In this document: positions 17,822-44,884 of the stretch, one piece after another | Numbering within the stretch: position 1 is the stretch's first letter | Layout of the letters: each line of letters starts with the position of its first letter | Source: Macrostomum lignano | Taxonomy: Eukaryota | DNA length: 64,000 nt | NCBI GenBank assembly: GCA_002269645.1 | Contig: NIVC01000032.1 | Coordinates: forward strand, 1,178,001 to 1,242,000 | Reading direction: 5' to 3' | Notes under the pieces: model-generated | The model's database searches: none | What the model saw: the letters and a program-made list of their open reading frames with translations, nothing else | Told to the model about the DNA's origin: nothing | Position numbers and translations under genes: made by a program

Positions 17822-18607
17822 TCAACGCGGTGTCATGATATGCCGGCCCCCATCTACGGGAACGATGGTGCCAGTGATGAAGCTCGCAGCATCCGAGGCT
17901 AGAAAGGCCACCACAGTGGCCACCTCCTCCGGTTGGCCGGCCCTGCCCAGAGCGTGCGTGGTCTTGGACCGCTCCAGGAAGGCGGCGTAGGCTTCATCGG
18001 ACATGCCCGATCGCTTGTGAATCTCCGTGACAATCACGCCAGGATTCACCGAGTTCACGCGAACACTCTTCGACGCTAAGTCGAGCGCCGTACACCTGGT
18101 GAACTGGTCCAAAGAGGCTTTAGTCATGCAGTAGGTCATGACGTTTGGAAAGGCGCAATTACCAGCTACGGAGGACACGTTAACAACGCTGCCCCGACCG
18201 GAGGCGATCAGATGCGGCACGGCGGCTTGAGTCAGCTCGATCGCTGTGTCAACATTCAATCGGCGAAGTCCTTCAGCAGCGCTAGACGAATAAGTCTTAA
18301 CGGTGTCGTTGAGAAGAGCTCCAGCAGCGTTGACAAGAATGTGCAGGCGGCCGAACGCGTTGATGGCTGCTGGCACAACTTTGGCCAAATCAGCTGGTTG
18401 AAGCAGATCAGCAGAGAGAGTTGCTGCTGAGCTGTCCGACCCGACCTGCTTGCAGGCGGCCAGAGTCTCGTCCAGAGCGGTCTGGCTGCGGCCAACAAGC
18501 AGGACTCGAGCGCCGAGGCGAACCAGCTGGACAGCCACGGCTCGACCGATGCCAGAACTGGCCCCGGTTACTATGGCAACGCGATCGGTTAGGGATAGGG
18601 AGTCCAT
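17822..18607 (-). CDS. Classical short-chain dehydrogenase/reductase (FabG-like), intronless, about 261 aa
   Basis: TGASSGIG NAD(P)-binding motif, VNAAG, NVSS, YCMTK catalytic motif, VNSVNPG and DGG tail; ATG at 18607. Confidence 0.93.
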   Translation of the reverse strand: MDSLSLTDRVAIVTGASSGIGRAVAVQLVRLGARVLLVGRSQTALDETLAACKQVGSDSSAATLSADLLQPADLAKVVPAAINAFGRLHILVNAAGALLNDTVKTYSSSAAEGLRRLNVDTAIELTQAAVPHLIASGRGSVVNVSSVAGNCAFPNVMTYCMTKASLDQFTRCTALDLASKSVRVNSVNPGVIVTEIHKRSGMSDEAYAAFLERSKTTHALGRAGQPEEVATVVAFLASDAASFITGTIVPVDGGRHIMTPR

Positions 18608-18648
18608 GAATGAGCGAGGCGTATACTTGTACTTTTCAATGTGCGCTA

Positions 18649-18789
18649 GTTGCCATGGCGATACTGCTAAGGTGCCTATTCTAGAATCTCGAATTTGTAG
18701 GCCAGAAATCAACAGCCTAGAGACGATAGGGGGCCTATAGATAACTCGGCCCGGATTATCTTATCAATTACGCTAGTTGCTATAGCAAC
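18649..18789. promoter_or_regulatory. Two RFX X-box motifs upstream of the SDR ATG
   Basis: GTTGCCATGGCGAT at 18649-18662 and the palindrome GTTGCTATAGCAAC at 18776-18789; both are preceded by CGCTA. Confidence 0.6.
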
Positions 18790-18819
18790 AACAATACTAG
18801 GGAACCACTTTTAGATTAA

Positions 18820-19165
18820 AGCCGGGACTGTGTGCACCCTGGCACACTTTAAGCGATATTGTCGCACAACCGGCGAGAGGCATTGCTGCCAATTCAGCCG
18901 ACTCCCCTGAGCAGGCACACAGGCGCGCGGATACGTACGCAGTCATACGCACAGCACACACTCACACAGGAGTGTACAGCGGCCCTAACTTTATTTATCG
19001 TTAGGCATGTACACTTCACTGTGCCTTGGGGGTTGGGCCTCAAAGGCGTTAATTGCACGAGCAGAGCCAAGCCGAGATTCCAATTTAGCCCCAAATTAAT
19101 GTGACTGCACTTGGAGTCGAGCCTGGGCCGCTGGGGCATCAGAGCCTGCGCTGGACCACTGGGCT
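18820..19165 (-). mobile_element. tRNA-derived SINE, family A copy 1
   Basis: Highly similar to 24942-25313; B-box-like GGCTCGACTCC on the minus strand; no clear TSD. Confidence 0.8.
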
Positions 19166-19316
19166 CTACATGGATTAATAAAGTAAAAAAAGGTAAAAGA
19201 AAAACATTTTCAATTCCATCGTACCATAAACTGACTGTTACATTTATATTTGAATCGGGTACAAGATTATTGCTAAAACATGTCAGTTTAATAATTCCAC
19301 ATTTTCAGACATTTTT

Positions 19317-20811
19317 TCATTGATTGTCGTCTTCTTCACTTTCTTCCTCCTCCTCTCCGTCATCACTTGAGCCACCATCGGACTCTCCCAGCCGGTGCCG
19401 GATCCAAGCCGAAGCCTGAGCGGCAGTCTCAAACTGTTCCGCCTGCAACAGTCGCAGAAACGTTCGCTTGTCCCGTTCGCGCAGCTGCTGCACCTCCGAG
19501 TCGAGGCTGGCAGCTGCGGCCGCCGCCGCTCCGGCTGACTGATTTGCCAGCGATGGCGCCTCTGCCGGGGTCAGCTCTCGCTGCTGGGCGCACTTCTGAC
19601 ATTCGGCTCGATCACGGGCGCAGCTCTGACACACCTGGGAGAGAGAGATTTATTAATTATTAATAGTTGAATAATTTAATGACGAATGTTCATAGAATAC
19701 AATAGTAAACGGGTCATAGTGCTACTGGTCATACCCAAAGAAACTGGTCATAGTGCTACTGGTCATACCCAAAGAAACTGGTCATAGTGCTACTAGTCAT
19801 ACCCAAAGAAACTGGTCATAGTGCTACTAGTCATGCCCATAGAAACTGGTCATAGTGCTACTAGTCATGCCCATAGAAACTGGTCATAGTGCTACTAGTC
19901 ATGCCCATAGAAACTGGTCATAGTGCTACTAGTCATGCCCATAGAAACTGGTCATAGTGCTACTAGTCATGATCATAGAAACTGGTCATAGTGCTACTAG
20001 TCATGCCCATAGAAACTGGTCATAGTGCTACTGGTCATACCCAAAGAAACTGGTCATAGTGCTACTAGTCATACCCAAAGAAACTGGTCATAGTGCTACT
20101 AGTCATGCCCATAGAAACTGGTCATTGTGCTACTAGTCATGCCCATAGAAACTGGTCATAGTGCTACTAGTCATGCCCATAGAAACTGGTCATAGTGCTA
20201 CTAGTCATGCCCATAGAAACTGGTCATAGTGCTACTAGTCATGCCCATAGAAACTGGTCATAGTGCTACTAGTCATGATCATAGAAACTGGTCATAGTGC
20301 TACTAGTCATGCCCATAGAAACTGGTCATAGTGCTACTAGTCATGCCCATAGAAACTGGTCATTGTGCTACTAGTCATGCCCATAAAAACTGGTCATTGT
20401 GCTACTAGTCATGCCCATAGAAACTGGTCATTGTGCTACTAGTCATGCCCATAAAAACTGGTCATAGTGTGGAAGCTCATTCACTATACCAAAATAGATG
20501 ACTAAATCAAAAGCTTGACAAGCAACCAATAAAATCCGTACACATTTTCAACTCACAGTGAAATAAGCGCTCTGTATGCACCGTTTCTCGCAACGCACGC
20601 ACTTCCTTGGCTGAGTAGGCAGCTTGTACTTTTTATACTTCACCTTCCAGTCTAAAATATCTTTGCAGCGCTGACAGGTGAGGCCGCCAAAATTCAGTTG
20701 ATTGACAGTTTTTGTACGCTGAGAAGTGTCATGGATGCTGTTCTTGAATGCATGACTATTCTGATGTTTCTGAGGCCTACTTCGATTGGCGTTGCCCCGT
20801 TGCGAGCTCAT
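19317..20811 (-). CDS. C9orf85: C9orf85 homolog (DUF2039), 2 exons, about 190 aa
   Basis: Exon 1 20811-20557 (MSSQRGNANRSRPQKHQN..AFKN...CQRCKDILDWKVKYKKYK...KCVRC...|gtgagt). Exon 2 19634-19317 (ctcccag|VCQSCA...acidic tail). Phase-0 join. Confidence 0.92.
19710..20470. repeat. 34-bp minisatellite in the C9orf85 intron
   Basis: About 22 copies of AAACTGGTCATAGTGCTACTAGTCATGCCCATAG. Confidence 0.95.
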
Positions 20812-20944
20812 GGCAGTAAGATGTACATGTAGTTAAAGTCAGTGCGTGAAGTGATTTGACCTTTTACATTTATAACTTCTAATATGAGATAGTACGCATA
20901 CTAGACGAATGGTTTGTAATTATGGGTTCCTACCATGAGGCTCA

Positions 20945-21775: not shown

Positions 21776-22417
21776 TCAGTCCCAGGCATCGCTAATTACA
21801 GGATCAGCCGGTGAAAGCCTCAACTCTCCCCACTCCGCCTCGTTGATATCAGAGTCCCTGAGGGCACCCGACAGCAGAATCCAGCGAGAGAAACAGCCAA
21901 CATCAATTGGTCTCAATCGAGTCCAGCGCGGTTTCAAATGCTCGCAAGTGTGATCGGGCAGTCGACAGTCCGAGCTCAGCTCCGTAGCCCATAGCAACGA
22001 GACAAATCCCAGATTTAACCGTCTCAATTGTTGAGCATCTCTCAATTGGCACAGTCGGTTAATAAACTCAGCGCATCGGGGACTTCTAACCGATGGGGAT
22101 AATTGTCCCAACTGTAGGCTGCACTGTCGCAACTGATTAGTGTAATCCCCGTAGCTTGGATTGTTTCGCCAAGCCACAATGCCTAATGAGGCCACAAACA
22201 GGTAAGCTAGAGTTTTACGCGGTGCAGACTCCATGTCGGCCAGGGCTTCCGCGGCAGCTTGTCGGTAATCTACTAGAAGCCGGCGCAGATAAGAGGACAG
22301 ATTCGAATACTGACGATGCCAGAAATTTGCTTTCAACTTTTCCTGCTGCTGGGTCTCTAAGGCTGCCGTGCAAAGTCGACGAATGAGAACGAGTCGAGCC
22401 ATGGAGATGATTGGCAT
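21776..22417 (-). CDS. TIMM29: Mitochondrial TIM22 complex subunit Tim29 homolog, intronless
   Basis: LLVDYRQAA.EAL.DM..AP.K..AYL, a hydrophobic TM, NPS, LRRLNLGFVSLLW, DC...C.HLKP, IDVG and D.DINE.EW match the Tim29 pattern. The start could be 22417 or 22402. Confidence 0.85.
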   Translation of the reverse strand: MPIISMARLVLIRRLCTAALETQQQEKLKANFWHRQYSNLSSYLRRLLVDYRQAAAEALADMESAPRKTLAYLFVASLGIVAWRNNPSYGDYTNQLRQCSLQLGQLSPSVRSPRCAEFINRLCQLRDAQQLRRLNLGFVSLLWATELSSDCRLPDHTCEHLKPRWTRLRPIDVGCFSRWILLSGALRDSDINEAEWGELRLSPADPVISDAWD

Positions 22418-22494
22418 GAATTTGATCAAGTTTAGCCATGATTTAATGGGTGATGCGTAGAAGCTGGAATTTAGCGATTCTTATAGCAGTAATA

Positions 22495-22659
22495 ATACCA
22501 ATAATATTAATAGTAACAATAATAATAATAATAATGATAACAGTAGTAGTAGTAGTAGTCGTAGTAGTAGCAGTAGTAGTAGTATTAGTAGTAGTTGTAG
22601 TAGTAGTAGTATTAGTAGTAGTATTAGTAGTAGTTGTAGTAGTAGTAGTGTAGTAGTAT

Positions 22660-24505: not shown

Positions 24506-27500
24506 TCATTCCTTATTCTTTCGCTTCTTATTATCCGACAATCGTCGTTTTTTAATCTTCTTCCCATCGGCGGCATTGAAATCCTCTCGAGGTCGTTTCA
24601 ATGCCTTGACCTTTCTTGTCTGCAGTTTGTCCAACTCTTGCCGGCCGACGTGTACACGACCGAGACGATTGCCCAGACCATCGTCCGGCACAATGTTCTT
24701 GATCTTCTTGATCGTGGCAACTTTCGGCTGACGGCGAGCCTGCTTAGACTGCTCCGGCGTTGCCAACTTGTGCCTGCGCAGTCGCAAACCGAAACGCGGA
24801 CCCATCTCGGACAGCTCGACTCGGGGAATTTTCGAACCGGAGCTCTTCAGCAGGATGCGATAGGATCTGCGGGTTCCGTTTGGGATGGTTGATCTGATGA
24901 CTGATTCCCAGTCACTTGCGTCGCCTCAAGAGTCGTAGGTATTTTTTATTAGAGGCAGGGGGGTTGTGTGCACCTTGGCGCACTTTAAGCGACATAGGCA
25001 CACAACCAGCGAGAGGCATTGCTGCCAATTCCGCCGACTCCCCTGAGCAGGCACACAAGCGCGCGGATGCGTGCGCAGTCATACGCACAGGCACACACTT
25101 ACACAGGAGTGTACAGCGGCCCTAACTTTATATTATCGTTAGGCATGTACACTTCACTGCGCCTTGGGGGGTTGGCTCTCAAGGCCGTTAATTGCACGAG
25201 CAGAGCCAAGCCGAGATTCCAATTCAGCCCCAAATTAATGTGACTGCACTTGGAATCGAGCCTGGGTCGCTGGCACACCAGAGCAGCGGCGCTACCGCTG
25301 GGCTACGGCCCCCCAAGAGTCGTAGGTAACACAGGTAAAAAATAGGAAAGAAGTTCCTCTAGAAGACTCTAAAACAACAAGATGTCACGGTACAAGTCGC
25401 CAAAAAAATTCCTCCAAGAGTCAACTTGAGACTATTTGTGAATTTGGACAATCAAAACGGGACGCCATAGACATTCAAGCCAGGCCACAAATCTCACCCT
25501 AGTCATGAACTTTAGCAGTTAAGCAAAGTCTACTGAGGGAGGCTTGGCCATAGACTATAACTTTGGACATTCAAAAAGCCTTTCAATGGCGCCAGCAATT
25601 CCTGTAGCAGATCGCCAGCGGCTGATTGATGCGATTGAGCAAGGGTCATCCATTGCAGGAGCTGCAAGAATCTTGCGGTAACGGATACTTTGTTCACATT
25701 TAAATATTCCAGTTAGCCCTGAGATTTCATTAAATTGGGCAAATTCCCGTTTTGAACGGCTTTTTTTCATTTTCTCAAAACGACAAGGGCCGTTTTAGCG
25801 AAAGCAGAGCCAATCTACGAGTCTAGTATTGTTAATTCAATGGTCTCGTACTCTAATGTCTGCTTAAATTAATGCCCAAAGAATTTTAAACAACACTGCG
25901 TGCGTTTGTAAAGCCTATGTACAATTCGATCGATAATTTCTGTTTTCAAGTTGGTTTTTCTCGCCGGCCAATAGAAAAGCCGCGCATATATTATGCTAGC
26001 CTGAAATTAAGCTCTCCTCGCGCGCCCACCCCAGCCCGCTCTTTATCAGTCCTGTCTGGGTGGGGCGCCCGGGGTTAGACCCTTGTTTGCTGTTTACCCG
26101 TCTCTCCGCTTCGCTCCGCCACAGTTCTAAGTCACACCTCTGCCAAGTCTCAGTCACGCCACCGCCACCGTCAATTCTCGACCACGCCACCACTACCGTC
26201 TGTAAAGGGTTCTCGCTACGAGTACCGCCACCACACGATCACTGCCATCACATCGTCGCCATTGCCTCAGGCTCATCAACTCGCTCTATCATCTATCATC
26301 TATCTTGTTGTTGCGCAGCCGCCCAGTGCATTCCTTACGGATTCAGCAAATACTCAGGCCCATCTCTATTAACTACCCAGACGGAATTGATAATAACGAG
26401 CCCTAACTATCCACTCATACGGGTACAATAAATGAGAACTGCGGCCACCGCCCGCATCATTCGTCACTATCATCAAGTGCTACCGCTACAAAGTTTGCCT
26501 CTGCTGTATTCGTATTCGTCAGTTAATTTCGAGTCTGCCGGTTAATCGTCACAAGTCGCCCCCCTGAGTCGCTTTCTTTTTGGGAATATTCTGGAATATC
26601 ATTAAGAAATTAGGAGTCGCATCAATGATATGCGTCACAAACGCCTCACCTGACAAGAATCTGGCCATCGCAATAGGAGAATTGAATCAGCTGCTCAAGG
26701 CCTTGGAGACGAATCTTCTCAACCCGAGGACCTTGGAACATGTCCAGCAGCAGGTTTTTAATAGCCATCAGAGTTGGGTCGCTGTCAAACTCTTCGCCCT
26801 AAAAATTATTGTTTTCAGGTGTAGGGTGGATTGTTGAAATCGCATTCAAGAGATTTAATCAAATCAGTCATAGCACACAATTTGTCTAAATCATAGCCTA
26901 GGATGTCTAGATGCCAAGATTAATGGCTAAGATGACCAAAACATATTTAAATACATAGATCAGCCATCCCATCTAGATTTCACTCATTAGATGTCTAGAT
27001 GACAGCAATCACAATGTCTAGATGACAGCAATCACAATGTCTAGATGATAGCAATCACAATGTCTAGATGACAGCAATCACAATGTCTAGATGACAGCAA
27101 TCACAATGTCTAGATGACAGCAATCACAATGTCTAGATGATAGCAATCACAATGTCTAGATGTCAGCAATCACAATGTCTAGATGACAGCAATCACAATG
27201 TCTAGATGACAGCAATCACAATGTCTAGATGTCAGCAATCACAATGTCTAGATGACAGCAATCACAATGTCTAGATGATAGCAATCACAATGTCTAGATG
27301 TCAGCAATCACAATGTCTAGATGACAGCAATCACAATGTCTAGATGATAGCAATCACAATGTCTAGATGTCAGCAATCACAATGTCTAGATGACAGCAAT
27401 CACAATGTCTAGATGACAGCAATCACAATGTCTAGATGTCAGCAATCACAATGTCTAGATGACAGCAATCGCAATGTCTAGATGTCAGCAATCACAATGT

Positions 27501-29869
27501 CTAGATGATCACAATGTCTAGATGATCACAATGTCTAGATGATCACAATGTCTAGATGATCACAATGTCTAGATGACAGCAATCACAATGTCTAGATGTC
27601 AGCAATCACAATGTCTAGATGATCACAATGTCTAGATGATCACAATGTCTAGATGATCACAATGTCTAGATGACAGCAATCACAATGTCTAGATGATCAC
27701 AATGTCTAGATGTCAGCAATCACAATGTCTAGATGACAGCAATCACAATGTCTAGATGTCAGCAATCACAATGTCTAGATGATCAAAATGTCTAGATGAC
27801 AGCAATCACAATGTCTAGATGTCAGCAATCACAATGTCTAGATGATCACAATGTCTAGATGACAGCAATCACAATGTCTAGATGTCAGCAATCACAATAT
27901 GCAGATGACAGCAATCACAATGCCTACATGACAGCAATCACAATGTCTAGATGACAGCAATCACAATGTCTAGATGAGAGCAATCACAATGTCTAGATGA
28001 CAGCAATCACAATGTCTAGATGACAGCAATCACAATGTCTAGATGACAGCAATCACAATGTCTAGACGACAGCAATCACAATGTCTAGATGTCAGCAATC
28101 ACAATGCCTAGATGACAGCAATCACAATGCCTAGATGACAGCAATCACAATGCCTAGATGACAGCAATCACAATGCCTAGATGACAGTAATCACAATGCC
28201 TAGATGACAGCAATCACAATGCCTAGATGACAGTAATCACAATGCCTAGATGATATCAATCAGATATCTAGATGACAGCAATCACAATGTCTAGATGACA
28301 GCAATCACAATGCCTAGATGATATCAATCAGATGTCTAGATGACAGCAATCACAATGTCTAGATGATCACAATGTCTAGATGTCAGCAATCACAATGTCT
28401 AGATGACAGCAATCACAATGTCTAGATGTCAGCAATCACAATGTCTAGATGATCAAAATGTCTAGATGACAGCAATCACAATGTCTAGATGTCAGCAATC
28501 ACAATGTCTAGATGATCACAATGTCTAGATGACAGCAATCACAATGTCTAGATGTCAGCAATCACAATATGCAGATGACAGCAATCACAATGCCTACATG
28601 ACAGCAATCACAATGTCTAGATGACAGCAATCACAATGTCTAGATGAGAGCAATCACAATGTCTAGATGACAGCAATCACAATGTCTAGATGACAGCAAT
28701 CACAATGTCTAGATGACAGCAATCACAATGTCTAGACGACAGCAATCACAATGTCTAGATGTCAGCAATCACAATGCCTAGATGACAGCAATCACAATGC
28801 CTAGATGACAGCAATCACAATGCCTAGATGACAGCAATCACAATGCCTAGATGACAGCAATCACAATGCCTAGATGACAGCAATCACAATGCCTAGATGA
28901 CAGCAATCACAATGCCTAGATGACAGCAATCACAATGCCTAGATGACAGCAATCACAATGCCTAGATGATATCAATCAGATGCCTAGATGACAGCAATCA
29001 CAATGCCTAGATGACAGCAATCACAATGCCTAGATGACAGCAATCACAATGTCTAGATGACAGCAATCACAATGCCTAGATGACAGCAATCACAATGCCT
29101 AGATGACAGCAATCACAATGCCTAGATGACAGCAATCACAATGCCTAGATGACAGCAATCACAATGCCTAGATGACAGCAATCACAATGCCTAGATGACA
29201 GCAATCACAATGTCTAGATGATATCAATCAGATGTCTAGATGACAGCAATCACAATGTCTAGATGTCAGCAATCACAATGCCTAGATGACAGCAATCACA
29301 ATGCCTAGATGACAGTAATCACACGTCTAGATTACAGTAGCCACATGGCTAGATCACACTTATTACAGTCATCCTATGTCTAAACCAAACTACAATAAAA
29401 TAGTATTTAAATAATGTTCAACAATTAGACTCACCTGAAAGCTAAGACATGGCTTAGTGCCAACAGGCACCTTGGCAACGGGAAAAGTACACAATGGCTG
29501 GTAGCCTTCAACGCCAAACTCAATCATATCCAGCAGCTGGTAGTTAAACAGCCTGCCTAGCACCAGATTATTCGGTCGCTTTTTCGAATGGCTTGCAAAA
29601 GCGAATAGCGAGCAGTCGTACTTTCGACTCATCTTTTCAACAAAGCTAATCTCTTCGAATGGTAAAATTGGATTGCGGCGTTTCAGCATCAGAGCGTGCG
29701 GCTTTTTTAAGCTGTACAAATCTTTCAGACAGGAACCGATGGCTTCGCTAGTATTGCCGCCGCGGATGAGTAAGCACGACTTTGTGTTTTCTATCACCTT
29801 CTCTTCTCGCCTGGCTAATGCTCGCTTGCCGGCTTGAGTCTTCGGCTTGATCACGCTGTTTGAGGCCAT
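24506..29869 (-). CDS. RPF2: Ribosome production factor 2 (Brix domain), 3 exons, about 314 aa
   Basis: Exon 1 29869-29435 (KPKTQAGKRAL..RE.KVIEN...SHSKKRPNNLVLGR...DMIEFG...|gtgagt). Exon 2 26798-26650 (GEEFD...KNLLLDMFQG...GLEQLI..|gtgagg). Exon 3 24866-24506 (RSYRILLKSSGSKIPRVELSEMGP...KNI). Phases are consistent (435+149+361 nt). Confidence 0.95.
24942..25313 (-). mobile_element. tRNA-derived SINE, family A copy 2, with 15-bp TSD
   Basis: Head GGGGCCGTAGCCCAGCGG (A box) and GGCTCGATTCC (B box), A-rich tail; exact TSD CAAGAGTCGTAGGTA at 24927-24941 and 25314-25328. Confidence 0.9.
26990..29335. repeat. 23-bp minisatellite (with a 17-bp variant) in RPF2 intron 1
   Basis: TCTAGATGACAGCAATCACAATG repeated about 100 times; shorter variant TCTAGATGATCACAATG. 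Confidence 0.97.
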
Positions 29870-30039
29870 GCCAAGCTGCACTGCTGATGGATGGCTTGCT
29901 TGATTGACAGTTTGCTACTGAGCTGCTGCTCGCAGTGGGAATGGGTTTTTGTAGTGAAGACTCCATATTGATTCGTTGATTGCTCAAGTAAAGTTCATAG
30001 TAGAGATGAGAAAAATATCAATTTTCTAGGGAGAAAGAC

Positions 30040-33181: not shown

Positions 33182-33637
33182 TTGGCATAATATAAAAATT
33201 TACATTGACAATTGATGATTCATAAAATGTACCACTTGTAATTGACTACTAAGGTGCCTTGAAATTATGAATGTGTACTTTACCTACAGTCCGTGTTATT
33301 GCAACATTAGCTAGGGTAGGGTGGAGGCAGCTAAATACTAAGACAGTATAAATATTAAATATCAAGAGGACCTATGCCGGAGCCATCCAAGGAAAGGTCA
33401 TGATGGTCAGCTGTCTCCCTAGTGAAAATTGAAGGGCCTCGTGTGCAATGGGAAAATCTTGTTAGTCCAACAAAAAAAGCAAAACGCAATCCGATTTAAG
33501 TGGACCTCTTTCATACATAACACTACAACACTGATTTTACTTGAAAGCGCGTATAAATCTTAGTAAATTAACACAAATTGAAAATGCTTTAGTAAAATAA
33601 GTTATTTCACTTCTTCCTTGGTAAATGTTTTTTCGCG

Positions 33638-34872
33638 TTAATAATTGCAAACAACATCAACGCGATTGTAAGGCTCTAGTACTTTACGCAGACTGGCAAT
33701 TAACTCAGTCTGAATGAGCTCCACCTGTTCAGTTGGGCAGTAATCGTCTAGAGACGATCTGGCAATGGTGACGCAAGCAGGAGGACCGTATCGAGCTGAC
33801 AACTCACTCAACCAATTGCCAAAACTGTCAATCATCAGGCGAATCTCGTCTGGCGAAGAGACTCGATGCGGTAGGTCGCCACCAAGACCGTCTTGACCGC
33901 TGAGTACTTCGTGTAAATCTTCTGGCGTCCATGTTGTAGCAGTAGCAGTAGCGCTACTATCGCCGTTTCCATGACGACGAGCCCACGCGAACAGAGAACG
34001 AAGAACAGTTCGATCTTGAGCATCATCCTTCTCGGCGTCATCAACTTCATCAACGTTGATAGCCTCGCTACTCGTACTAGCTTCAGTTTTACTATCCAAT
34101 TCACTGGAAACTTCCATCATGATTTGACCCAACCGTTCCAAGCGTTGCTCCCTTCGCCTGCAAGCCGTCTCAAGAGCCGGGCCCTCTTCGACAATTTCGC
34201 CACCGCGCCAGCCGTAGACGCTACGAGCGGCGCTAATCAGATCAGCTGGTAGCCACTTCGACGGAGCGTCCTGCGTAGAGAAATAGTCCAAGTCAACATC
34301 GACAACGTAAGCGGCAGCCTGACCGAGACCCGATTGGCCGACACAATCGCAATCCAGTGCACTGCTAAACTCGTGCGAGCACAGGTGAAATTGGCTAATC
34401 TTATTACTATTCTTGCCTATCTCTGCTTCGGGTATGGAGGTCAAATGGTGACAGTACATACACTCGGCCGCAAAATAAGGCAGGCCGCAGTCTAAACGTA
34501 AAGGTGCTTCAACAGCAGCAGCGGCTGACGATTCAACTGGACAAGGACCAATACGAACTAGACGACGCTTTATATCCGGCAGCTGGTCCGACCAAGGCGG
34601 TCGCAGCCAAACAACGTATCAAAGTGGCCAGCATAGGCAGCTGGCAGAATCCAACTCCCAATACTCAGTTGCGATTGCAACGCGCCATCAACTCCAGCGT
34701 CCAGGCATTCGTTGGCTGTTAACTTAGGCGGCAACTGCAGATCAGGATGCGAGTCCAGGTGCAACAGTGTTAAACGAGAAAACGGCAAACGCTTTGAACC
34801 GATTAAACGGTAGATATCCAATAGCACCTCGTGGTGCGGCTCGCGAATGAACACGCGTATTGGTTGGCGTTG
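33638..34872 (-). CDS. C5orf22: UPF0489/C5orf22 homolog; one apparent 1-nt frameshift near 34610 and no in-frame ATG
   Basis: PIRVFIREPHHEVL.DIYRLIGSKRLP, LHLDSHPDL, LSIGSWILPAAYAGH, then in a shifted frame WLRPPWSDQ...YFAAE...VDVDLDYFSTQD...TIARSSLDDYCP.EQVE.IQ. Confidence 0.85.
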
Positions 34873-34957
34873 CTTGACCAGAAAGATGTTGTAAAAAACT
34901 TGGTTTATTTTTGCAAATAGCACAATATATCTGCTTTTAGAACAAAACAAAGGAATT

Positions 34958-37900
34958 CATAGGCGTAGGAACGGGGGGTGGGAGGCAGTGGGGCCATGCC
35001 CCCGGCCACTTTTTAAAATGGGGGGGGGGGCAGTAATGGTATCTGGCCCCTCCACATTTTAAATGTAAAATGTAGACTTCTTGCTTATTTTTGGTTTTTG
35101 CTGCTTTGCATGAATTCATTTTGCTGCAGGGCGGCAAAACATAGCGCCTGCAGCGCCAAAATGAGAGCCTGCGGCGCTAAAATGCGGGCCTGCGGCGCTA
35201 AAATGAGTGCCTGTGTCGCTAAAATGAGTGCCTGCGTCGCTAAAATGAGTGCCTGTGTCGCTAAAATGAGTGCCTGCGTCGCTAAAATGAGCGCCTGTGT
35301 CGCTAAAATGAGTGCCTGCGTCGCTAAAATGAGTGCCTGTGTCGCTAAAATGAGTGCCTGCGGCGCTAAAATGAGTGCCTGTGTCGCTAAAATGAGTGCC
35401 TGCGGCGCTAAAATGAGTGCCTGTGTTGCTAAAATGAGTGCCTGCGGCGCTAAAATAAGTGCCTGTGTCGCTAAAATGAGTGCCTTTGTCGCTAAATTGA
35501 GTGCCTGTGTCGCTAAAATGAGTGCCTGTGTTGCTAAAATGAGTGCCTGTGTCGCCAAAATGAGTGCATGCGGCGCTAAAATGAGTGCCTGGGGCGCTAA
35601 AATGAGTGCCTGCGGCGCTAAAATGAGTGCCTGCGGCGCTAAAATGAGTGCCTGCGGCGCTAAAATGAGTGCCTGGGGCGCTAAAATGAGTGCATGCGGC
35701 GCTAAAATGTGTGCCTGTGTCGCTAAAATGAGTGCCTGCGTCGCTAAAATGAGCGCCTGTGTCGCTAAAATGAGTGCCTGCGTCGCTAAAATGAGTGCCT
35801 GTGTCGCTAAAATGAGTGCCTGCGGCGCTAAAATGAGTGCCTGTGTGGCTAAAATGAGTGCCTGCGGCGCTAAAATGAGTGCCTGTGTTGCTAAAATGAG
35901 TGCCTGCGGCGCTAAAATAAGTGCCTGTGTCGCTAAAATGAGTGCCTGCGGCGCTAAAATGAGTGCCTGCGGCGCTAAAATGAGTGCCTGCGGCGCTAAA
36001 ATGAGTGCCTGTGTCGCTAAAATGAGTGCCTTTGTCGCTAAATTGAGTGCCTGTGTCGCTAAAATGAGTGCCTGTGTCGCTAAAATGAGTGCCTGTATCG
36101 CTAAAATGAGTGCCTGGGGCGCTAAAATGAGTGCATGCGGCGCTAAAATGAGTGCTTGCGTCGCTAAAATGAGCGCCTGTGTCGCTAAAATGAGTGCCTG
36201 CGTCGCTAAAATGAGTGCCTGTGTCGCTAAAATGAGTGCCTGCGGCGCTAAAATGAGTGCCTGCGTCGCTAAAATGAGTGCCTGTGTCGCTAAAATGAGT
36301 GCCTGCGGCGCTAAAATGAGTGCCTGTGTCGCTAAAATGAGTGCCTTTGTCGCTAAATTGAGTGCCTGTGTCGCTAAAATGAGTGCCTGCGGCGCTAAAA
36401 TGAGTGCCTGTGTCGCTAAAATGAGTGCCTGCGGCGCTAAAATGAGTGCCTGCGGCGCTAAAATGAGTGCCTGTGTCGCTAAAATGAGTGCCTGTGTCGC
36501 TAAAATGAGTGCCTGTGTCGCTAAAATGAGTGCATGCGGCGCTAAAATGAGCGCCTGTGTCGCTAAAATGAGTGCCTGTGTCGCCAAAATGAGTGCATGC
36601 GGCGCTAAAATGAGTGCCTGGGGCGCTAAAATGAGTGCATGCGGCGCTAAAATGAGTGCCTGCGGCGCTAAAATGAGTGCCTGCGTCGCTAAAATGAGCG
36701 CCTGTGTCGCTAAAATGAGTGCCTGCGTCGCTAAAATGAGTGCCTGTGTCGCTAAAATGAGTGCCTGCGGCGCTAAAATGAGTGCCTGTGTCGCTAAAAT
36801 GAGTGCCTTTGTCGCTAAATTGAGTGCCTGTGTCGCTAAAATGAGTGCCTGCGGCGCTAAAATGAGTGCCTGTGTCGCTAAAATGAGTGCCTGCGGCGCT
36901 AAAATGAGTGCCTGCGGCGCTAAAATGAGTGCCTGTGTCGCTAAAATGAGTGCCTTTGTCGCTAAATTGAGTGCCTGTGTCGCTAAAATGAGTGCCTGCG
37001 GCGCTAAACTGAGTGCCTGTGTCGCTAAAATGAGTGCCTGTGTCGCTAAAATGAGTGCCTGTGTCGCCAAAATGAGTGCATGCGGCGCTAAAATGAGCGC
37101 CTGTGTCGCTAAAATGAGTGCCAGTGTCGCCAAAATGAGTGCATGCGGCGCTAAAATGTGTGCCTGTGTCGCTAAAATGAGTGCCTGTGTCGCTAAAATG
37201 AGTGCCTGTGTCGCCAAAATGAGTGCATGCGGCGCTAAAATGAGCGCCTGTGTCGCTAAAATGAGTGCCTGTGTCGCCAAAATGAGTGCATGCGGCGCTA
37301 AAATGAGTGCCTGGGGCGCTAAAATGAGTGCATGCGGCGCTAAAATGAGTGCCTGCGGCGCTAAAATGAGTGCCTGCGTCGCTAAAATGAGCGCCTGTGT
37401 CGCTAAAATGAGTGCCTGCGTCGCTAAAATGAGTGCCTGTGTCGCTAAAATGAGTGCCTGCGGCGCTAAAATGAGTGCCTGTGTCGCTAAAATGAGTGCC
37501 TTTGTCGCTAAATTGAGTGCCTGTGTCGCTAAAATGAGCGCCTGTGTCGCTAAAATGAGTGCCTGTGTCGCCAAAATGAGTGCATGCGGCGCTAAAATGT
37601 GTGCCTGTGTCGCTAAAATGAGTGCCTGTGTCGCTAAAATGAGTGCCTGTGTCGCCAAAATGAGTGCATGCGGCGCTAAAATGAGCGCCTGTGTCGCTAA
37701 AATGAGTGCCTGTGTCGCCAAAATGAGTGCATGCGGCGCTAAAATGAGTGCCTGGGGCGCTAAAATGAGTGCATGCGGCGCTAAAATGTGCCTGCGGCGC
37801 TAAAATGAGTGCCTGCGTCGCTAAAATGAGCGCCTGTGTCGCTAAAATGAGTGCCTGCGTCGCTAAAATGAGTGCCTGTGTCGCTAAAATGAGTGCCTGC

Positions 37901-39176
37901 GGCGCTAAAATGAGTGCCTGTGTCGCTAAAATGAGTGCCTGTGTCGCCAAAATGAGTGCATGCGGCGCTAAAATGAGTGCCTGGGGCGCTAAAATGAGTG
38001 CATGCGGCGCTAAAATGAGTGCCTGCGGCGCTAAAATGAGTGCCTGCGTCGCTAAAATGAGCGCCTGTGTCGCTAAAATGAGTGCCTGCGTCGCTAAAAT
38101 GAGTGCCTGTGTCGCTAAAATGAGTGCCTGCGGCGCTAAAATGAGTGCCTGTGTCGCTAAAATGAGTGCCTTTGTCGCTAAATTGAGTGCCTGTGTCGCT
38201 AAAATGAGCGCCTGTGTCGCTAAAATGAGTGCCTGTGTCGCCAAAATGAGTGCATGCGGCGCTAAAATGTGTGCCTGTGTCGCTAAAATGAGTGCCTGTG
38301 TCGCTAAAATGAGTGCCTGTGTCGCCAAAATGAGTGCATGCGGCGCTAAAATGAGCGCCTGTGTCGCTAAAATGAGTGCCTGTGTCGCCAAAATGAGTGC
38401 ATGCGGCGCTAAAATGAGTGCCTGGGGCGCTAAAATGAGTGCATGCGGCGCTAAAATGAGTGCCTGCGGCGCTAAAATGAGTGCCTGCGTCGCTAAAATG
38501 AGCGCCTGTGTCGCTAAAATGAGTGCCTGCGTCGCTAAAATGAGTGCCTGTGTCGCTAAAATGAGTGCCTGCGGCGCTAAAATGAGTGCCTGTGTCGCTA
38601 AAATGAGTGCCTTTGTCGCTAAATTGAGTGCCTGTGTCGCTAAAATGAGTGCCTGCGGCGCTAAAATGAGTGCCTGTGTCGCTAAAATGAGTGCCTGCGG
38701 CGCTAAAATGAGTGCCTGCGGCGCTAAAATGAGTGCCTGTGTCGCTAAAATGAGTGCCTTTGTCGCTAAATTGAGTGCCTGTGTCGCTAAAATGAGTGCC
38801 TGCGGCGCTAAAATGAGTGCCTGTGTCGCTAAAATGAGTGCCTGTGTCGCTAAAATGAGTGCCTGTGTCGCCAAAATGAGTGCATGCGGCGCTAAAATGA
38901 GCGCCTGTGTCGCTAAAATGAGTGCCTGTGTCGCCAAAATGAGTGCATGCGGCGCTAAAATGTGTGCCTGTGTCGCTAAAATGAGTGCCTGTGGTGCTTT
39001 ATAAAATGAGTGCAGACAAGATGGATTCTGAAAATAATCGGTACATGATAATGTGCATTTTCCATATAAAAAATCTAACTCGACGGGGGCGTGCGCCCTG
39101 TGCGCCCCCCCCCCCCCCCTAAATCCGTCACTGAACCTGCCCCCTCCCCACTTTTTAAAATGTTCCTACGCATATG
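34958..39176. mobile_element. Composite hAT-type MITE containing a 3.9-kb satellite and an end of the 3435-family MITE
   Basis: TIRs CATAGGCGTAGGAAC / GTTCCTACGCATATG; exact 8-bp TSD AAGGAATT at 34950-34957 and 39177-39184. Segment 39040-39133 is the reverse complement of 3435-3530. Confidence 0.85.
35150..39010. repeat. 21-bp satellite (GCTAAAATGAGTGCCTGTGTC), about 180 copies
   Basis: Direct tandem array with recurring variant units (CTTTGTCGCTAAATTG, CCTGGGGC, GCATGC). Confidence 0.97.
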
Positions 39177-39470
39177 AAGGAATTCTATATCAATCTTTTT
39201 AAGCTCGATGAAAAATTATTGAGTAAAAATTGAAAAATCCGACAGCAATAAAAATACAATTATGATCTACTATGAGCATGTATCTCGTTTTTTTATATTT
39301 TCTTCATAGATGAGCAGCAATGAGAACAGTTTGATGAAAACTATTATTAGTAAACACTGTATGATTTTATGTAATCAGACTCAACTATCAGACGTGCTAT
39401 TTACTACAGATCAAATGAAGTTAAAAACCCACGAAACTACACGAAGTTCCCCAGATCCATAAAGTTTCAC

Positions 39471-39962
39471 TTATTCCTTCTTCTCCTCCTGAGCAGCCAA
39501 CAAAGCGGACTTGATACCAATCTTCTTCAACTCCTCAATCAATTCGCCATTTTGATGCATTTTAATCAGCACATCACAGCCGCCGATGAACTCGCCATTA
39601 AAGTACACCTGAGGAATAGTTGGCCAATCGCTAAACGTTTTAATATCCTGCCTCAGCTGCTCATTGTCGAGAACGTTGTGCGCGGAATACACGTCCGGTT
39701 TTAAGCCGTGAAATTCGAGAATTTTGATAACGGCATTGGAGAAACCGCAACGTGGCTCCTCCGGTACGCCTTTCATAAAGACGACAACCTTGTTGGCTTT
39801 GACCATTTCGGCTATTTTATCGTGCATTGAACCGGTGGTGCTGGAAGTCGATAGCGATGACGTAAGCAGTGAAGACAGGGTTGGCGATAGCTTACATTGA
39901 CGCAGCGAAGCTGTCGTATTGAATAGGCAGCGTAAATTAAACATGCTGATTGCAAAGTTCAT
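39471..39962 (-). CDS. GLRX5: Mitochondrial monothiol glutaredoxin 5, intronless
   Basis: [47 protein letters not shown]; Ser/Arg-rich N-terminal presequence. Confidence 0.96.
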
Positions 39963-40429
39963 GCATGAGTGTGTACGAGCATCTCAAGTGACTTAAGTAG
40001 ACAAAGTGCAATAAGTTGACAAAGTGTAACAGTGTGCCCTCAGTCAGATTGAAAACTAGAAGTCATGCGCAAACGTGTTTTTGGACAAAGATCAGTTAAT
40101 CTAAGCCAAAACAAAATTAGGCGAGCCCTAAAAATTCGGTTGCGAGCATCTAAACCAAGAAGTCAGAATGATTGCGAAAGCCGGAAAGTCCCAGAAGAGA
40201 TCGCCAACACAGGCGACCGTCAAATTCTGCGAAATATTGACTATCGAATAGGCATTCTGACAATTGTTGCGTTGACGCAAAATCGCTTCCGCGTTTTCAA
40301 GGCTCCACTATTTCTGCGTCAGACTTTGCGCTTCATCATCATTCTGAGGACTAATTATTATTCTGAGTTTGTTTGAGCACTGACCTCGCTACCTGGCAAG
40401 AGTACAACTTGGCTATTTTCCAGGGTTTC

Positions 40430-41600
40430 GTGGTGATTCTACCAGGTGAAGTGGTGATTCTACCAGGTGAAGTGGTGATTCGACCAGGTGAAGTGGTGAT
40501 TCTACCAGGTGAAGTGGTGATTCTACCAGGTGAAGTGGTGATTCTACCAGGTGAAGTGGTGATTCTACTAGGTGAAGTGGTGATTCGACCAGGTGAAGTT
40601 GTGGTGATTCTACCAGCTGAAGTGGTGATTATACGAGGTGAAGTGGTGATTCGACCAGGTGAAGTGGTGATTCTTTCAGATGAAGTGGTGATTCTACCAG
40701 GTGAAGTTGTGGTGATTCTACCAGCTGAAGTGGTGATTATACGAGGTGAAGTGGTGATTCTACCAGCTGAAGTGGTGATTCTACCAGCTGAAGTGGTGAT
40801 TCTAACAGCTGAAGTGGTGATTCTACCAGATGAAGTGGTGATTATACGAGGTAAAGTGGTGATTCTTTCAGGTAAATTGGTGAATCTACCAGATAAAGTG
40901 GTGATCCTACCGGGTAAAGTGGTGATCCTACCGGGTAAAGTGGTGATCCTACCGGGTAAAGTGGTGATCCTACCAGGTAAAGTGGTGATCCTACCGGGTA
41001 AAGTGGTGATCCTACCGGGTAAAGTGGTGATCCTACCGGGTAAAGTGGTGATCCTAGCAGGTAAAGTGGTGATCCTACCGGGTAAAGTGGTGATCCTACC
41101 AGGTAAAGTGGTGATCCTACCAGGTAAAGTGGTGATCCTACCAGGTAAAGTGGTGATCCTAGCAGGTAAAGTAGTGATCCTACCAGGTAAAGTGGTGATC
41201 CTACCGGGTAAATTGGTGATCCTACCGGGTAAAGTGGTGATCCTACCGGGTAAAGTGGTGATCCTAGCAGGTAAAGTGGTGATCCTACCGGGTAAAGTGG
41301 TGATCCTACCAGGTAAAGTGGTGATCCTACCGGGTAAAGTGGTGATCCTACCAGGTAAAGTGGTGATCCTACCGGGTAAAGTGGTGATCCTAGCAGGTAA
41401 AGTGGTGATCCTAGCAGGTAAAGTGGTGATCCTACCAGGTAAAGTGGTGATCCTGCCAGGTAAAGTGGTGATCCTACCGGGTAAAGTGGTGATCCTACCG
41501 GGTAAAGTGGTGATCCTACCAGGTAAAGTGGTGATCCTACCAGGTAAAGTGGTGATCCTACCAGGTAAAGTGGTGATCCTACCAGGTAAAGTGGTGATTT
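40430..41600. repeat. 21-bp minisatellite (GGTAAAGTGGTGATCCTACCG / GGTGAAGTGGTGATTCTACCA)
   Basis: Two sub-arrays: a GAA variant on the left and an AAA variant on the right. Confidence 0.95.
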
Positions 41601-42124
41601 CTCAGGAAAAAGGCCATTATTCAGGGTCAATTAATAGGATTTATTAACTTTCCTGGGTAAAGGGTCGAATCTTTAGGATGAAGGGGTGATTCTTCCTAAA
41701 GGAGTTAATAAGGGAATTTTTTTAGGGGCAGGTCGTTTTTAGTAGGTGTCGACATCCACGTATGCTAGTTAGCTAATTTAATTGTAAAAAGAGTCAATTA
41801 AAAAAATCTGGGTTAAATCAAATCAGCATCGTGCAGAAGAAATGCAGTTAAACACCATATAGTACAACTGAGAACATGTACTTTTAAAATACAACATACA
41901 TGAATACTGTATTACCTACGCGCATATTAAAACTTAATTAAGCCAGAATTTAAAAGTGTAGCAATCAGCATAGGAACGAAGATTGACTCTTATTATTACA
42001 CCATTGTATCGTGTAGACGAATAACATTTCGTCACTATGGCAACAAAAGTACACACTTACAATGGGATTAACACGGTTACTGTATAATAAAGCAACAAGT
42101 TCCAAGCAAACAGACGCGCAACAA

Positions 42125-43472
42125 TCAGGGCTCGCTAGTGCGAAATGTGTCGGACAAGATGACGAAGGTACCGTCGGACTGGCGTGACAGGACGAACGCT
42201 TGAGAAAATAATTTATGCCGGCGATCTTCGCAGCGTAGAAATTTTACCTGACCGTGGCAGGTAGCAAGCAGCGAGTTCGGCGGAAATATGTCGCCGTCAA
42301 GGAGTTGAGCGCTAACGCTGTAGGGCTGCGCTACGCAATTGGGTAGTTGAGCATAGAACTGCCCGATCTCCTGCGGGTTAGAATTCAGTGGGCAGGCCTA
42401 ATCTAGCTCAGCCAATGAGAGAGCAGTATAAGGAGAGGGTGAAAGTCAGACGGACGAAACTCAGCCTAGGGGGCAGGTCCAATCTAGCTCAGCCAATGAG
42501 AGAGCAGTAAGGAGAGGGTGAAAGTCAGACGGACGAAACTCAGCCTAGGGGGCAGGTCCAATCTAGCTCAGCCAATGGGAGAGCAGTAAGGAGAGAGGTT
42601 AAAGTCAGATCCAAGCGGACAAGAAGAAAGCCACTGTTTATCGGCTTGGCTGATGGGGGGGGGGCTTTTCTCTTACACGTTATGCTCTCGCACTGGATTT
42701 GGCTCTTTGAAGTCTTCCTGTAATCTTCTAATTTTCTTTTCTTGAATAATTTCGAGCCTGAGACAGGGTGGAGTCAGTAAAACTGGATCAACGCGCTAAT
42801 TTAATGGGGCAAAATGCTAATTTGTATAGTACGAAACAGATAAATACTGCTACCCTTCAGGATAATGTCCCTGGAATATGATAGCACACAACATAAAACA
42901 TCGCCTTGAATCATTTATGACGCCAGACTCTTAAATCTTTTAAAATTGCAATCCTACGAAACTTTCACAAGACTGTACAAACCTTCAAGACTGTACCTTC
43001 CTAAAACTGTACAAACCTTTGAAAGACGTTACAACCCTTCACAAGACTGCACAGACCTTCCCAAGACTGCACAGACCTTCCCAAGACTGCACAAACCTTC
43101 CCAATACTTTACAACCCTTCAAAAGACTGCACAAACCTTCCCAAGACTGCACAACCCTTTACAAGACTGTACAAACGTTCCCAACACTTTACAAACCTTC
43201 ACAAAACTGTACAACTCTTCACATGATCGTAAAAACCTTAAAACTACAACATTTCAAAAAATTAAACAACAAAAAATAAAATGAAAATAAAATTATCAAA
43301 CCTGTTTCCCTGAATGCCTGTGACCATTCCAAGCTAGCACAGCCTGATCGGCATATAGTGGAGTCAAATTCTGTCTAGTGTCGCTCATTCTTTTGTAGTA
43401 CATTGTGCAGAAACGAACTGCAGCTGCATCGCATCGAGCCTGATCTAAAGGCTTATTGTTGTCAGATGACAT
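42125..43472 (-). CDS. NXT1: NTF2-related export protein (NXT1/p15), 2 exons, 138 aa; absent from the ORF track
   Basis: Exon 1 43472-43302 MSSDNNKPLDQARCDAAAVRFCTMYYKRMSDTRQNLTPLYADQAVLAWNGHRHSGKQ|gtttga. Exon 2 42370-42125 ttctaacccgcag|EIGQFYAQLP...ATCHGQVKF...LFSQAFVL...FVILSDTFRTSEP*. Phase-0 join; the length matches the NXT family. Confidence 0.9.
42390..42610. repeat. About 80-bp tandem repeat (about 2.7 copies) with CCAAT boxes in the NXT1 intron
   Basis: ATCTAGCTCAGCCAAT starts at 42401, 42482 and 42561. Confidence 0.85.
42955..43215. repeat. Degenerate 20-bp minisatellite in the NXT1 intron
   Basis: CCAAGACTGCACAGACCTTC-like units. Confidence 0.8.
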
Positions 43473-44884
43473 GACTCACTGATGATGGTATTGGTGACAA
43501 ATTAATTAATTCACAAATAAAAATGATTGTAGCTAATTAGCTAAAGATGCATGCAATGAGATTAATATTTCCAAATTACATCCAGCACTAATAAACAGCA
43601 AAAACAAAAAAGCTGTATTTCAAAATATGGTAGAGTTCTCCAAAAAAACAAAATTTTCTGTATCCATATCTCAAACTTTTCCTATAGCCTATCATGATGA
43701 ATATTTGTAAAAACCATATCTAATCTCATAGCTTAAGCTAAGCTAGCCAGTCAGCTTGGTTAAACACTTATTTCCTAGATGGCTAGTAACTCAAATGTAG
43801 GACTTATATATGAAAAATTTCCTATGCAACAAATAGGCTATTTTAATGTTCTGCTATGTATTAGAGGGGGTAGATGACGCACTGAATTCAATGCAAATAA
43901 AACCTCAGGAATGCAATTAAATTTTAATGATTATATGCTGAAGAGGCTGGGTAACCATTATTTGCTCCTTTTATTTGAGCTGTACTTTCTGGGATAGTGG
44001 ACAAGTTAGCTACATTGGTATCTTAACAGTAGAAGGGCCAATAAACCATGTGACAATTTACCTTATAAAAATTTATAGAGTGCAGTTTAACTAAAAAGTG
44101 ATAGACTATAGTTTCACCTAGATAATTTTAATAGACTTCAGTCACAATGTTCTACTTTCCTGTCTTAATTTCTAGGGCTTAATTTTTATAGATTTTTTTC
44201 TAAATATGATTGCAATTTCTAACAACTTCAACTTCTAAATAGAAATTGGACTCATAATCATATAAATATATATATATGCTATATATGCTAGGCTTGGCCT
44301 AGATATTAGCTATAATCCAAATCATGGCAAGCATATGCCAGAAAAAAATTCTAGTTTTATTTTACAATTCATTCTTGTCTAATTTTCTTAATATTGAGAT
44401 TCAATATTAAGCCTAACTTGCATCTACTAGGCCTATTTATACTCTACTATCTATCAATATCATATATGCCCAACCTCAAAATTTCACCTATCCAGTGCAA
44501 CTTAGTTTTGTCCAGATTTGCGACTTAGTTCCTCCCAAATGCGACTTAGTTCTTCCCAAATGCGACTTAGTTTCTCTTAATTGCAACTTAGTTCTCCTGA
44601 TTGCAACTTAATTTTCATTTTGTATATGACTTTCTTGCCTTTTTTTCTTTCCTCTTTCCCCTTCTCTCTCTTCTCCCTTCTTTCTTTTCCTTTTCTCTTT
44701 CCTTTCTTTCCCCAAGTTTTTGTTTTTTGCCTTTTTAATTTTGCAACTTACCTTGGCCAGCAGCCATTTCACTTGTCTAGTTTGGATAGGTCGGACAGGT
44801 GTTGGGCATGATTGATCAATATTAATATTGACATTACTTGTTAAATATACAATGATAATAGAAAGAAAAACATTGATTATTTTA

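Follow-up and report, generated by a model that had tools for sequence, protein, structure and literature searches.

Operons of Caenorhabditis elegans hold two to eight genes and give a polycistronic precursor that is resolved by trans-splicing of an SL2-type spliced leader (SL), coupled to formation of the upstream 3′ end. Mitochondrial, RNA-processing and ribosome-biogenesis genes are overrepresented in them, their downstream members receive the dedicated SL2 and their spacers are about 100 nt. In parasitic flatworms (Schistosoma mansoni and cestodes) candidate operons, mostly gene pairs, have been defined by spacers of ≤300 nt, a limit termed very conservative by its own authors (PMC12582326). 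The AUG at the 3′ terminus of the SL is an initiator in flatworms according to Cheng et al. 2006, as cited in PMC12582326. The closest described system is that of Macrostomum lignano, the source of the DNA analysed here: a window of 64,000 nt, NIVC01000032.1:1178001-1242000 of assembly Mlig_3_7 (GCA_002269645.1), containing a run of eight genes, NXT1 to SDR, which is read here, with a probability of about 0.7, as an SL-resolved operon region of this species.

In M. lignano a 35-nt leader, CGGTCTCTTACTGCGAAGACTCAATTTATTGCATG, is joined to acceptors with the motif [T/C]TNCAG; 30% of genes are trans-spliced and 15% are in operons, the largest having nine genes (Ustyantsev & Berezikov 2021, PMC8629364). 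The spacers of these operons are inflated by repeats and the criterion applied to them is a repeat-adjusted distance of <1 kb; assembled units break at repeats (PMC8629364). Wudarski et al. 2017 (PMC5730564) had mapped reads that contain the leader; of the assembled transcripts, about 7% proved to be precursors bearing several trans-splice sites. In their annotation a gene-name prefix stands for a cluster of transcriptional units, out of which genes were cut at SL and poly(A) peaks; the units, made with StringTie/TACO, derive from coverage continuity and not from single molecules (PMC5730564).

The eight genes follow one another on the minus strand in the order NXT1, GLRX5, C5orf22, SCLY, RPF2, TIMM29, C9orf85, SDR. 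They are listed below in that order, with the Pfam family that assigns each of them and with putative SL junctions, at which a slash separates the last replaced or leader-like base from the first base of the mRNA body. The spliced models of NXT1, SCLY, RPF2 and C9orf85 were rebuilt and each matches a database protein exactly. CDS, coding sequence.

42125..43557, minus strand: NXT1 (Mlig012923g1), Pfam NTF2; CDS 43472..43302 plus 42370..42125, 138 aa, the unique one-intron model, identical to PAA93216.1; inferred SL junction 43550/43549, with the SL-like ATTGCATG at 43557..43550.
39471..39964, minus strand: GLRX5 (Mlig012208 family), Pfam Glutaredoxin; SL junction 39960/39959, stop 39471.
33638..34880, minus strand: C5orf22, Pfam UPF0489; SL junction 34879/34878.
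30883..33188, minus strand: SCLY-like cysteine desulfurase/selenocysteine lyase (Mlig005709g2), Pfam Aminotran_5; 484-aa model identical to PAA93213.1; SL junction 33186/33185, own ATG 33181, introns 32593..32028 and 31607..31327.
24506..29934, minus strand: RPF2 (Mlig015320g1), Pfam Brix; 314-aa model identical to PAA93212.1; SL junction 29933/29932, ATG 29869, introns 29434..26799 (holding a 23-nt satellite, 26991-29358) and 26649..24867.
21776..22418, minus strand: TIMM29 (Mlig015320.g2), Pfam Tim29; two SL junctions 15 nt apart, 22415/22414 and 22400/22399.
19317..20815, minus strand: C9orf85 (Mlig015320g3), Pfam DUF2039; 190-aa model identical to PAA93210.1; SL junction 20814/20813, ATG 20811, intron 20556..19635 with a 34-nt satellite.
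17822..18608, minus strand: SDR (Mlig004297 family), Pfam adh_short (17822-18712); inferred SL junction 18605/18604.

An ankyrin+Mab21 protein and then a GT32-like open reading frame (ORF) follow downstream of SDR, also on the minus strand according to Pfam. An earlier note on this DNA had placed these two (the former as a cGLR) and the eight genes on the minus strand and had recognised no gene opposing them; Pfam and the NCBI gene calls, which lie on the minus strand only between window positions 11776 and 49938, agree. Nine plus-strand ORFs within the run had no Pfam match above the curated cut-off. A tRNA or Rfam match was not obtained anywhere in the window, and neither an SL RNA gene nor a tRNA-derived SINE (short interspersed element) was found there. 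The nominal chance of ten genes in a row on one strand is about 2^-9, a figure calculated after the run had been singled out. Genes on the same strand, uninterrupted by a gene of the other strand, are what the definition of an M. lignano operon asks for (PMC8629364), and that is the arrangement found.

The same gene order is present on NIVC01000056.1 (contig 56; L002, L004) and NIVC01000895.1 (contig 895; L003, L005). The genes are not single-copy, contrary to what the earlier note had supposed: the genome has three near-identical loci (PMC7806878). The window copy is about 4% divergent from the other two, which are 99.3-99.4% identical to each other over NXT1 and C5orf22-RPF2 and 93-97% identical further down. 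The published names of the five central genes in the three copies are as follows.

C5orf22: Mlig033541g1 on contig 895, Mlig016861g1 on contig 56.
SCLY: Mlig005709g2 in the window, Mlig033541g2 on contig 895, Mlig016861g2 on contig 56.
RPF2: Mlig015320g1 in the window, Mlig033541g3 on contig 895, Mlig013633g1 on contig 56.
TIMM29: Mlig015320.g2 in the window (PMC7806878), Mlig018840g2 on contig 895, Mlig032364g1 on contig 56.
C9orf85: Mlig015320g3 in the window, Mlig018840g3 on contig 895, Mlig018840g1 on contig 56.

RPF2-TIMM29-C9orf85 have a single prefix in the window (Mlig015320) and C5orf22-SCLY-RPF2 have a single prefix on contig 895 (Mlig033541). A prefix common to unrelated genes means that they were cut from one unit, and therefore each of these two groups is annotated as a single transcriptional unit; across the copies the units tile C5orf22 through C9orf85. 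An earlier annotation, ML2, contains a 762-aa chimeric protein (UniRef A0A1I8IHQ3) made up of the C-terminus of C5orf22, SCLY and the N-terminus of RPF2, including the 5′ untranslated region (UTR) of RPF2. The acceptor used by this chimera is the RPF2 acceptor, 63 nt upstream of the RPF2 ATG. In the table of PMC5816591, as far as it is available, Mlig033541.g3 (RPF2, 1704 nt) is flagged TRANSSPLICED and stringent neoblast and is placed in one group with Mlig018840.g4, annotated as RPF2 and C9orf85. TIM29 is neoblast-enriched as well (PMC7806878), and this co-expression with RPF2 was counted in favour of an operon. No unit or chimera joins NXT1-GLRX5, GLRX5-C5orf22 or C9orf85-SDR. It is likely that the five core genes, C5orf22 to C9orf85, are co-transcribed, the step taken here being the joining of the two annotated units; for a single primary transcript carrying all eight genes, with NXT1, GLRX5 and SDR included, the odds are put a little below even.

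The spacers were then recounted. From stop to ATG there are 456 nt between C5orf22 and SCLY, exactly as the earlier note had it, and 1013 nt between SCLY and RPF2 (about 1 kb in the note). Its figures of 371 nt for GLRX5-C5orf22 without an insertion and about 0.35 kb for C9orf85-SDR without a SINE were reproduced as 365-371 nt and, once a 337-nt dispersed repeat is subtracted, 375 nt. With repeats removed and 3′ UTRs included, the stop-to-acceptor distances from NXT1-GLRX5 through C9orf85-SDR are 996, 365, 452, 796, 725, 421 and 375 nt; all seven are below the 1000 bp of PMC8629364. All are above 300 nt, the cut-off of PMC12582326, which applies to annotated gene models. Distances from transcript end to acceptor are shorter than these stop-to-acceptor figures: the RPF2 mRNA of 1704 nt, for example, implies a 3′ UTR of about 700 nt, after which about 450 nt, repeat-adjusted, remain before TIMM29. 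AATAAA and ATTAAA signals were absent or uninformative in several spacers and 3′ ends could not be placed from them. Beyond SDR the spacer to the cGLR gene is about 2240 nt after satellite removal and exceeds the 1 kb limit.

Much of the length between the genes is repetitive: satellites found with Tandem Repeats Finder (TRF) occupy most of the long spacers and two introns. The main repeats within the spacers are the following.

40430..41598, unstranded: 21-nt minisatellite, 55 copies (TRF), in the NXT1-GLRX5 spacer.
34958..39176, unstranded: non-autonomous element with inverted ends CATATGCGTAGGAAC / GTTCCTACGCCTATG, in the GLRX5-C5orf22 spacer.
18829..19165, unstranded: 337-nt dispersed repeat, like a SINE or a MITE (miniature inverted-repeat transposable element), in the C9orf85-SDR spacer; a 90.6% identical copy lies at 24965-25304 in RPF2 intron 2.

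The non-autonomous element is flanked by an 8-nt target-site duplication (TSD), AATTCCTT, at 39184..39177 and 34957..34950, and contains 183 copies of a 21-nt satellite (35154-38993, TRF). The inverted ends and the duplication rule out that this 3.9-kb array is a simple satellite with no surrounding element. The element and the satellites are common to all three copies of the locus, with differing copy numbers (the satellite of the element is about 0.47 kb, 2.1 kb and 3.8 kb long in the three), and because of this presence in all three they are considered old and not recent insertions. The C9orf85-SDR spacer is about 700 nt in every copy.

Comparison of the three copies at the 5′ ends of the genes gave the evidence for trans-splicing. 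The junctions read as follows, with the slash at the point where the mRNA body begins.

NXT1: ATTGCATG/ in the window and on contig 56; ATTTTATG/ on contig 895.
GLRX5: catGCATG/ in the window; catttcag/AACTTT on contigs 56 and 895.
C5orf22: tttcTG/ in the window; catctttcag/GTCAAGC on contigs 56 and 895.
SCLY: tattATG/ in the window; tatattcag/CCAAATG on contigs 56 and 895.
RPF2: cccacTG/ in the window; cccacag/ on contigs 56 and 895.
TIMM29, site 1: aaattCATG/ in the window and on contig 895; aaatttATG/ on contig 56.
TIMM29, site 2 (15 nt on): atctcCATG/ in the window; atctcTATG/ on contigs 56 and 895.
C9orf85: ttacTG/ in the window and on contig 895; ttacag/ on contig 56.
SDR: cattCATG/GACTCC in all three copies.

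Eleven sites at the main junctions, and a twelfth at the second TIMM29 junction, vary among the copies at positions -2 to -5; the -4 base of TIMM29, for instance, is T in some copies and C, the SL base, in others. In 12/12 cases the derived base is the SL base, and the changes always form a contiguous block from -2 upward. SL-suffix substitutions are present at all seven downstream junctions. When 20 kb of aligned non-satellite sequence were searched in gene orientation for changes from AG to TG, 5/11 were exactly on junctions, against about 0.004 expected. Matches to the SL suffix of 7-9 nt taken alone are near chance (12 seen, about 8 expected) and count as evidence only because of the comparison between copies. 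The candidate acceptors of the cGLR gene showed no leader-type change. On contig 895 the annotated partial CDSs start directly behind the acceptor in GLRX5 and C5orf22, and one base later, with the first in-frame codon, in SCLY.

The methods of the genome paper offer an explanation for this pattern: the Canu assembly was polished by Pilon with Illumina DNA reads and also with RNA-seq reads mapped by STAR. Reads whose first bases are the final ones of the leader would map with mismatched ends and would outvote the DNA reads most strongly at -2 and less so upstream, and exactly the nested block seen at the junctions is predicted. The footprints are fullest in the window copy, whose divergence suffices for reads to be mapped uniquely; in the other two they occur mainly where contigs 56 and 895 differ. 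The altered acceptors (TG, ATG, CATG, GCATG) are accordingly interpreted, from sequence comparison, as an RNA-seq polishing artefact, with AG at these positions in the real genome, and in each of the eight genes the footprints are read as marks of real trans-splice sites. On this view the downstream member of each pair would be SL trans-spliced, as expected in an operon.

The earlier note had pointed to an acceptor-like AG 6 nt before the NXT1 ATG; the dinucleotide is there, but a trans-splice site 77 nt before the ATG (43550/43549) seems the more likely acceptor. In GLRX5 the sequence GCATG (39964..39960) stands where the paralogs have TTCAG; the AUG of the SL would be in frame. The 'ATG' that GLRX5 shows at 39962 is in all likelihood absent from the genome itself, and the ATGs of TIMM29 and SDR are probably not genomic either. 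At both TIMM29 junctions the SL AUG is in frame and the annotated partial CDSs begin right after one or other ATG; in SDR it is again in frame (M-DSLSLTDRV..), and the contig-56 partial CDS begins right after the ATG. C5orf22 lacks a genomic ATG for its conserved N-terminus, which reads M-VKQRQPIRVFIRE when the SL AUG is used. Its frame is broken in the window by a 1-nt deletion near 34616 and on contig 56 by a 2-nt deletion (L002, about position 12540), and the gene is intact only on contig 895 (413 aa, Mlig033541g1); the deletions reflect either decaying duplicates or assembly errors.

Some further differences of the same type were seen away from the eight junctions. AG in the paralogs is TG in the window at 30698, 39014, 43728 and 14113 (minus strand); the one at 30698, between SCLY and RPF2, comes after a TTTTAG and may indicate an additional, minor trans-splice site. 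Sites 53589 (plus strand), 10177 (minus strand) and 8008 (minus strand) could be more polishing footprints, left at trans-splice sites of other genes; their number is close to chance.

It could be argued that the altered acceptors are real, the window copy being a decaying homeologue that has lost them or one converted in the germ line by SL-bearing cDNA. The altered bases do stand in the deposited sequence, C5orf22 is frameshifted in the window too, and an earlier assembly had a full SL fused to a protein-coding gene (PMC8629364). Mutation, however, is not expected to produce the SL base at 12/12 sites nested from -2, as leader-internal reads would, and RNA-seq did go into the published Pilon polishing. 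The frequency of the changes tracks the uniqueness of read mapping; introns are retained, giving no sign of cDNA-mediated conversion, and at least six independent conversions at one locus are implausible. Real sequence change is therefore regarded as highly improbable. One form of the idea, in which SL-bearing mRNAs repeatedly templated germ-line conversion of the 5′ junctions of their own genes and fixed the leader AUG in the genome, is rated a shade lower still; if it were true, trans-spliced cistrons would have been turned into genes with a genomic start codon.

In the mechanism proposed for the operon, RNA polymerase II would start in an AT-rich region of about 9 kb upstream of NXT1 and read the minus strand through the cistrons.

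43551..52683, unstranded: divergent AT-rich region between NXT1 (minus strand) and a fucokinase-like gene (plus strand), about 9 kb, holding the NXT1 outron.

No gene is annotated between 43472 and 49938. The promoter of the unit presumably lies in this region and is shared with the divergent fucokinase-like gene, its position being deduced from the arrangement. The 35-nt leader (..TTGCATG) would be trans-spliced onto a [T/C]TNCAG acceptor 0-77 nt before each coding sequence and form the 5′ end of each mRNA, and 3′ ends would be made by cleavage and polyadenylation within the spacers. For GLRX5, C5orf22, TIMM29 and SDR the leader-terminal AUG, in frame, would serve as the start codon, C5orf22 having no other. 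Satellites and small transposons would have expanded the spacers while the unit stayed unbroken. The unit probably ends at SDR because the spacer from SDR to the cGLR gene is about 2.2 kb without its satellite and shows no footprint.

Several observations weigh against the operon. NXT1, GLRX5 and SDR bear unit prefixes of their own (Mlig012923, Mlig012208 and Mlig004297). Spacers of 365-996 nt are well over the 100-nt mode of the species and also over the 300 nt set as the limit for parasitic flatworms (PMC12582326), and with such lengths internal promoters are possible. Canonical AATAAA is absent from several spacers, and flatworms are without an SL2-type leader to mark downstream operon genes (PMC12582326). 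On the side of trans-splicing, the SL junctions were deduced from annotation boundaries and differences among copies; the annotated 5′ end is not after the acceptor for GLRX5 (window and contig 56) or SDR (window), and TIMM29 and SDR read ATG in all three copies, which is compatible with a genuine genomic start codon.

A rival reading is a set of several shorter units, in which NXT1, GLRX5 and SDR have their own promoters and are monocistronic and trans-spliced, and only the five core genes, or two three-gene units, are polycistronic. The three genes have separate prefixes in all three copies and the NXT1-GLRX5 spacer is still 996 nt without its satellite. About 60% of those genes in the species that undergo SL trans-splicing are outside operons (PMC8629364), and about 2 kb of upstream sequence sufficed for promoter activity in the genes tested (PMC5730564). 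The prefix splits, however, fall exactly on the 1.2-kb satellite, the 4.2-kb satellite-bearing element and the dispersed repeat, the kind of place where RNA-seq assembly breaks (PMC8629364). All three disputed junctions are within the published 1 kb limit, and without repeats only about 370 nt each, 3′ UTR included, are left between GLRX5 and C5orf22 and between C9orf85 and SDR. Shorter units are, on balance, considered unlikely. Still less credible is that there is no operon, the eight genes being independently promoted and each trans-spliced to trim its outron, with the units and the chimera as artefacts of read-through or short-read assembly. The dependence of StringTie/TACO units on coverage continuity, the spacers, long by operon standards, and the nonexistence of an SL2-like marker in flatworms (PMC12582326) would all suit it. 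Artefacts of this kind do not readily explain why merges at different junctions in different copies jointly tile five genes, or why three of them were fused in an independently made annotation of a different assembly. Both RPF2 and TIM29 are enriched in neoblasts, a run of ten genes on one strand with none opposing them is unusual, and only about 450 nt separate the RPF2 3′ UTR of about 700 nt from TIMM29. Independent promotion throughout is thus judged quite improbable. The inference of the earlier note, a single SL-trans-spliced polycistronic unit comprising the whole run or part of it, is supported by these data: the units together with the chimera show continuous RNA across five genes, and there is acceptor evidence at eight.

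The surroundings of the run were also examined. On the upstream side, the fucokinase-like gene (plus strand; Pfam Fucose_pyrophosphorylase, 54333-55184) has an intact acceptor, ctcatttcag/GCAACTAAC, at 52683/52684 (52683-52760); it has no in-frame genomic ATG and the leader AUG is in frame, and this gene is probably SL trans-spliced too, as far as its sequence indicates. The AT-rich region contains a transposon.

44883-45880, unstranded: mariner-like element with 200-nt inverted ends that are 99.5% identical and a helix-turn-helix (HTH, Mos1-type) ORF at 45078-45437.

It is specific to the window copy; its absence from the contig-56 copy dates the insertion to a time after the divergence of the copies. 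Upstream of NXT1, at 48985-50192, there is a GA-rich stretch of low complexity, about 1.2 kb long and strongly asymmetric between the strands. Also on the upstream side, a G-protein-coupled receptor (GPCR) ORF at 58826-59950 gave no record in a database look-up. Downstream, the ankyrin+Mab21 gene (10452-13473, minus strand; the cGLR of the earlier note) encodes 954 aa with N-terminal ankyrin repeats and a C-terminal Mab21 domain. It is 4.3 kb from SDR, or 2.2 kb without a 31-nt satellite at 14271-16341, and its spliced model had no exact match to a database protein. ORFs resembling fragments of a retroelement protease/integrase were noted at 5300-7340 (minus strand), downstream of the GT32-like gene.

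Database searches with single genes added little. No record was found for the exact GLRX5 ORF, the M. lignano protein clusters being genome-derived only, with no Logan RNA assemblies among them. In a look-up of related species the nearest non-self GLRX5 was 56-60% identical and TIMM29 matched M. lignano alone; the only long foreign contig inspected (L007) had zf-AD neighbours and is not a flatworm operon.

M. lignano is already known to have operons of this kind, and existing annotation assigns the locus to multi-gene units; in that respect it is not new. No paper was found that describes the locus as an operon in its text, the genes carrying multi-gene unit names all the same. In the M. lignano genome and SL literature examined, no mention was found of the overwriting of trans-splice acceptors by RNA-seq polishing. 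The polishing of Mlig_3_7 seems to destroy AG and to create spurious ATG at the 5′ ends of expressed trans-spliced genes, and could distort motif statistics, start-codon calls and the design of promoters or outrons for transgenes; conversely, the footprints may be usable as a read-free marker of trans-splice sites. TIM29 has a published stem-cell/regeneration phenotype, and RNA interference or knock-out directed at one cistron or the upstream region may affect its neighbours. The locus would be a clear and large example of a flatworm operon, with five to eight genes over 26 kb, in which satellites and transposons on the kilobase scale are tolerated between cistrons and a start codon borne by the leader appears to be needed, or used, for four of the eight proteins.

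Compared with the SL operons already known from M. lignano (PMC5730564, PMC8629364), the locus shows no difference in kind: the species, the single 35-nt leader and the [T/C]TNCAG acceptor are the same, and it shares the spacers inflated by satellites and transposons, the repeat-adjusted distances of <1 kb and the overrepresentation of conserved genes and of genes expressed in neoblasts. A count of eight genes would place it near the top of the size range (maximum nine), and its spacers, at 365-996 nt, are in the upper accepted range rather than at the 100-nt mode. With parasitic flatworms it has in common a single leader ending in AUG and chimeric gene models as a sign of polycistronic precursors; acceptors shared between cis- and trans-splicing, known from those species, have their counterpart here in the RPF2 acceptor used by the chimeric model. 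The operons of C. elegans are alike in logic and gene content, whereas the M. lignano locus has a single leader, long repeat-filled spacers and a leader-borne AUG able to start translation.

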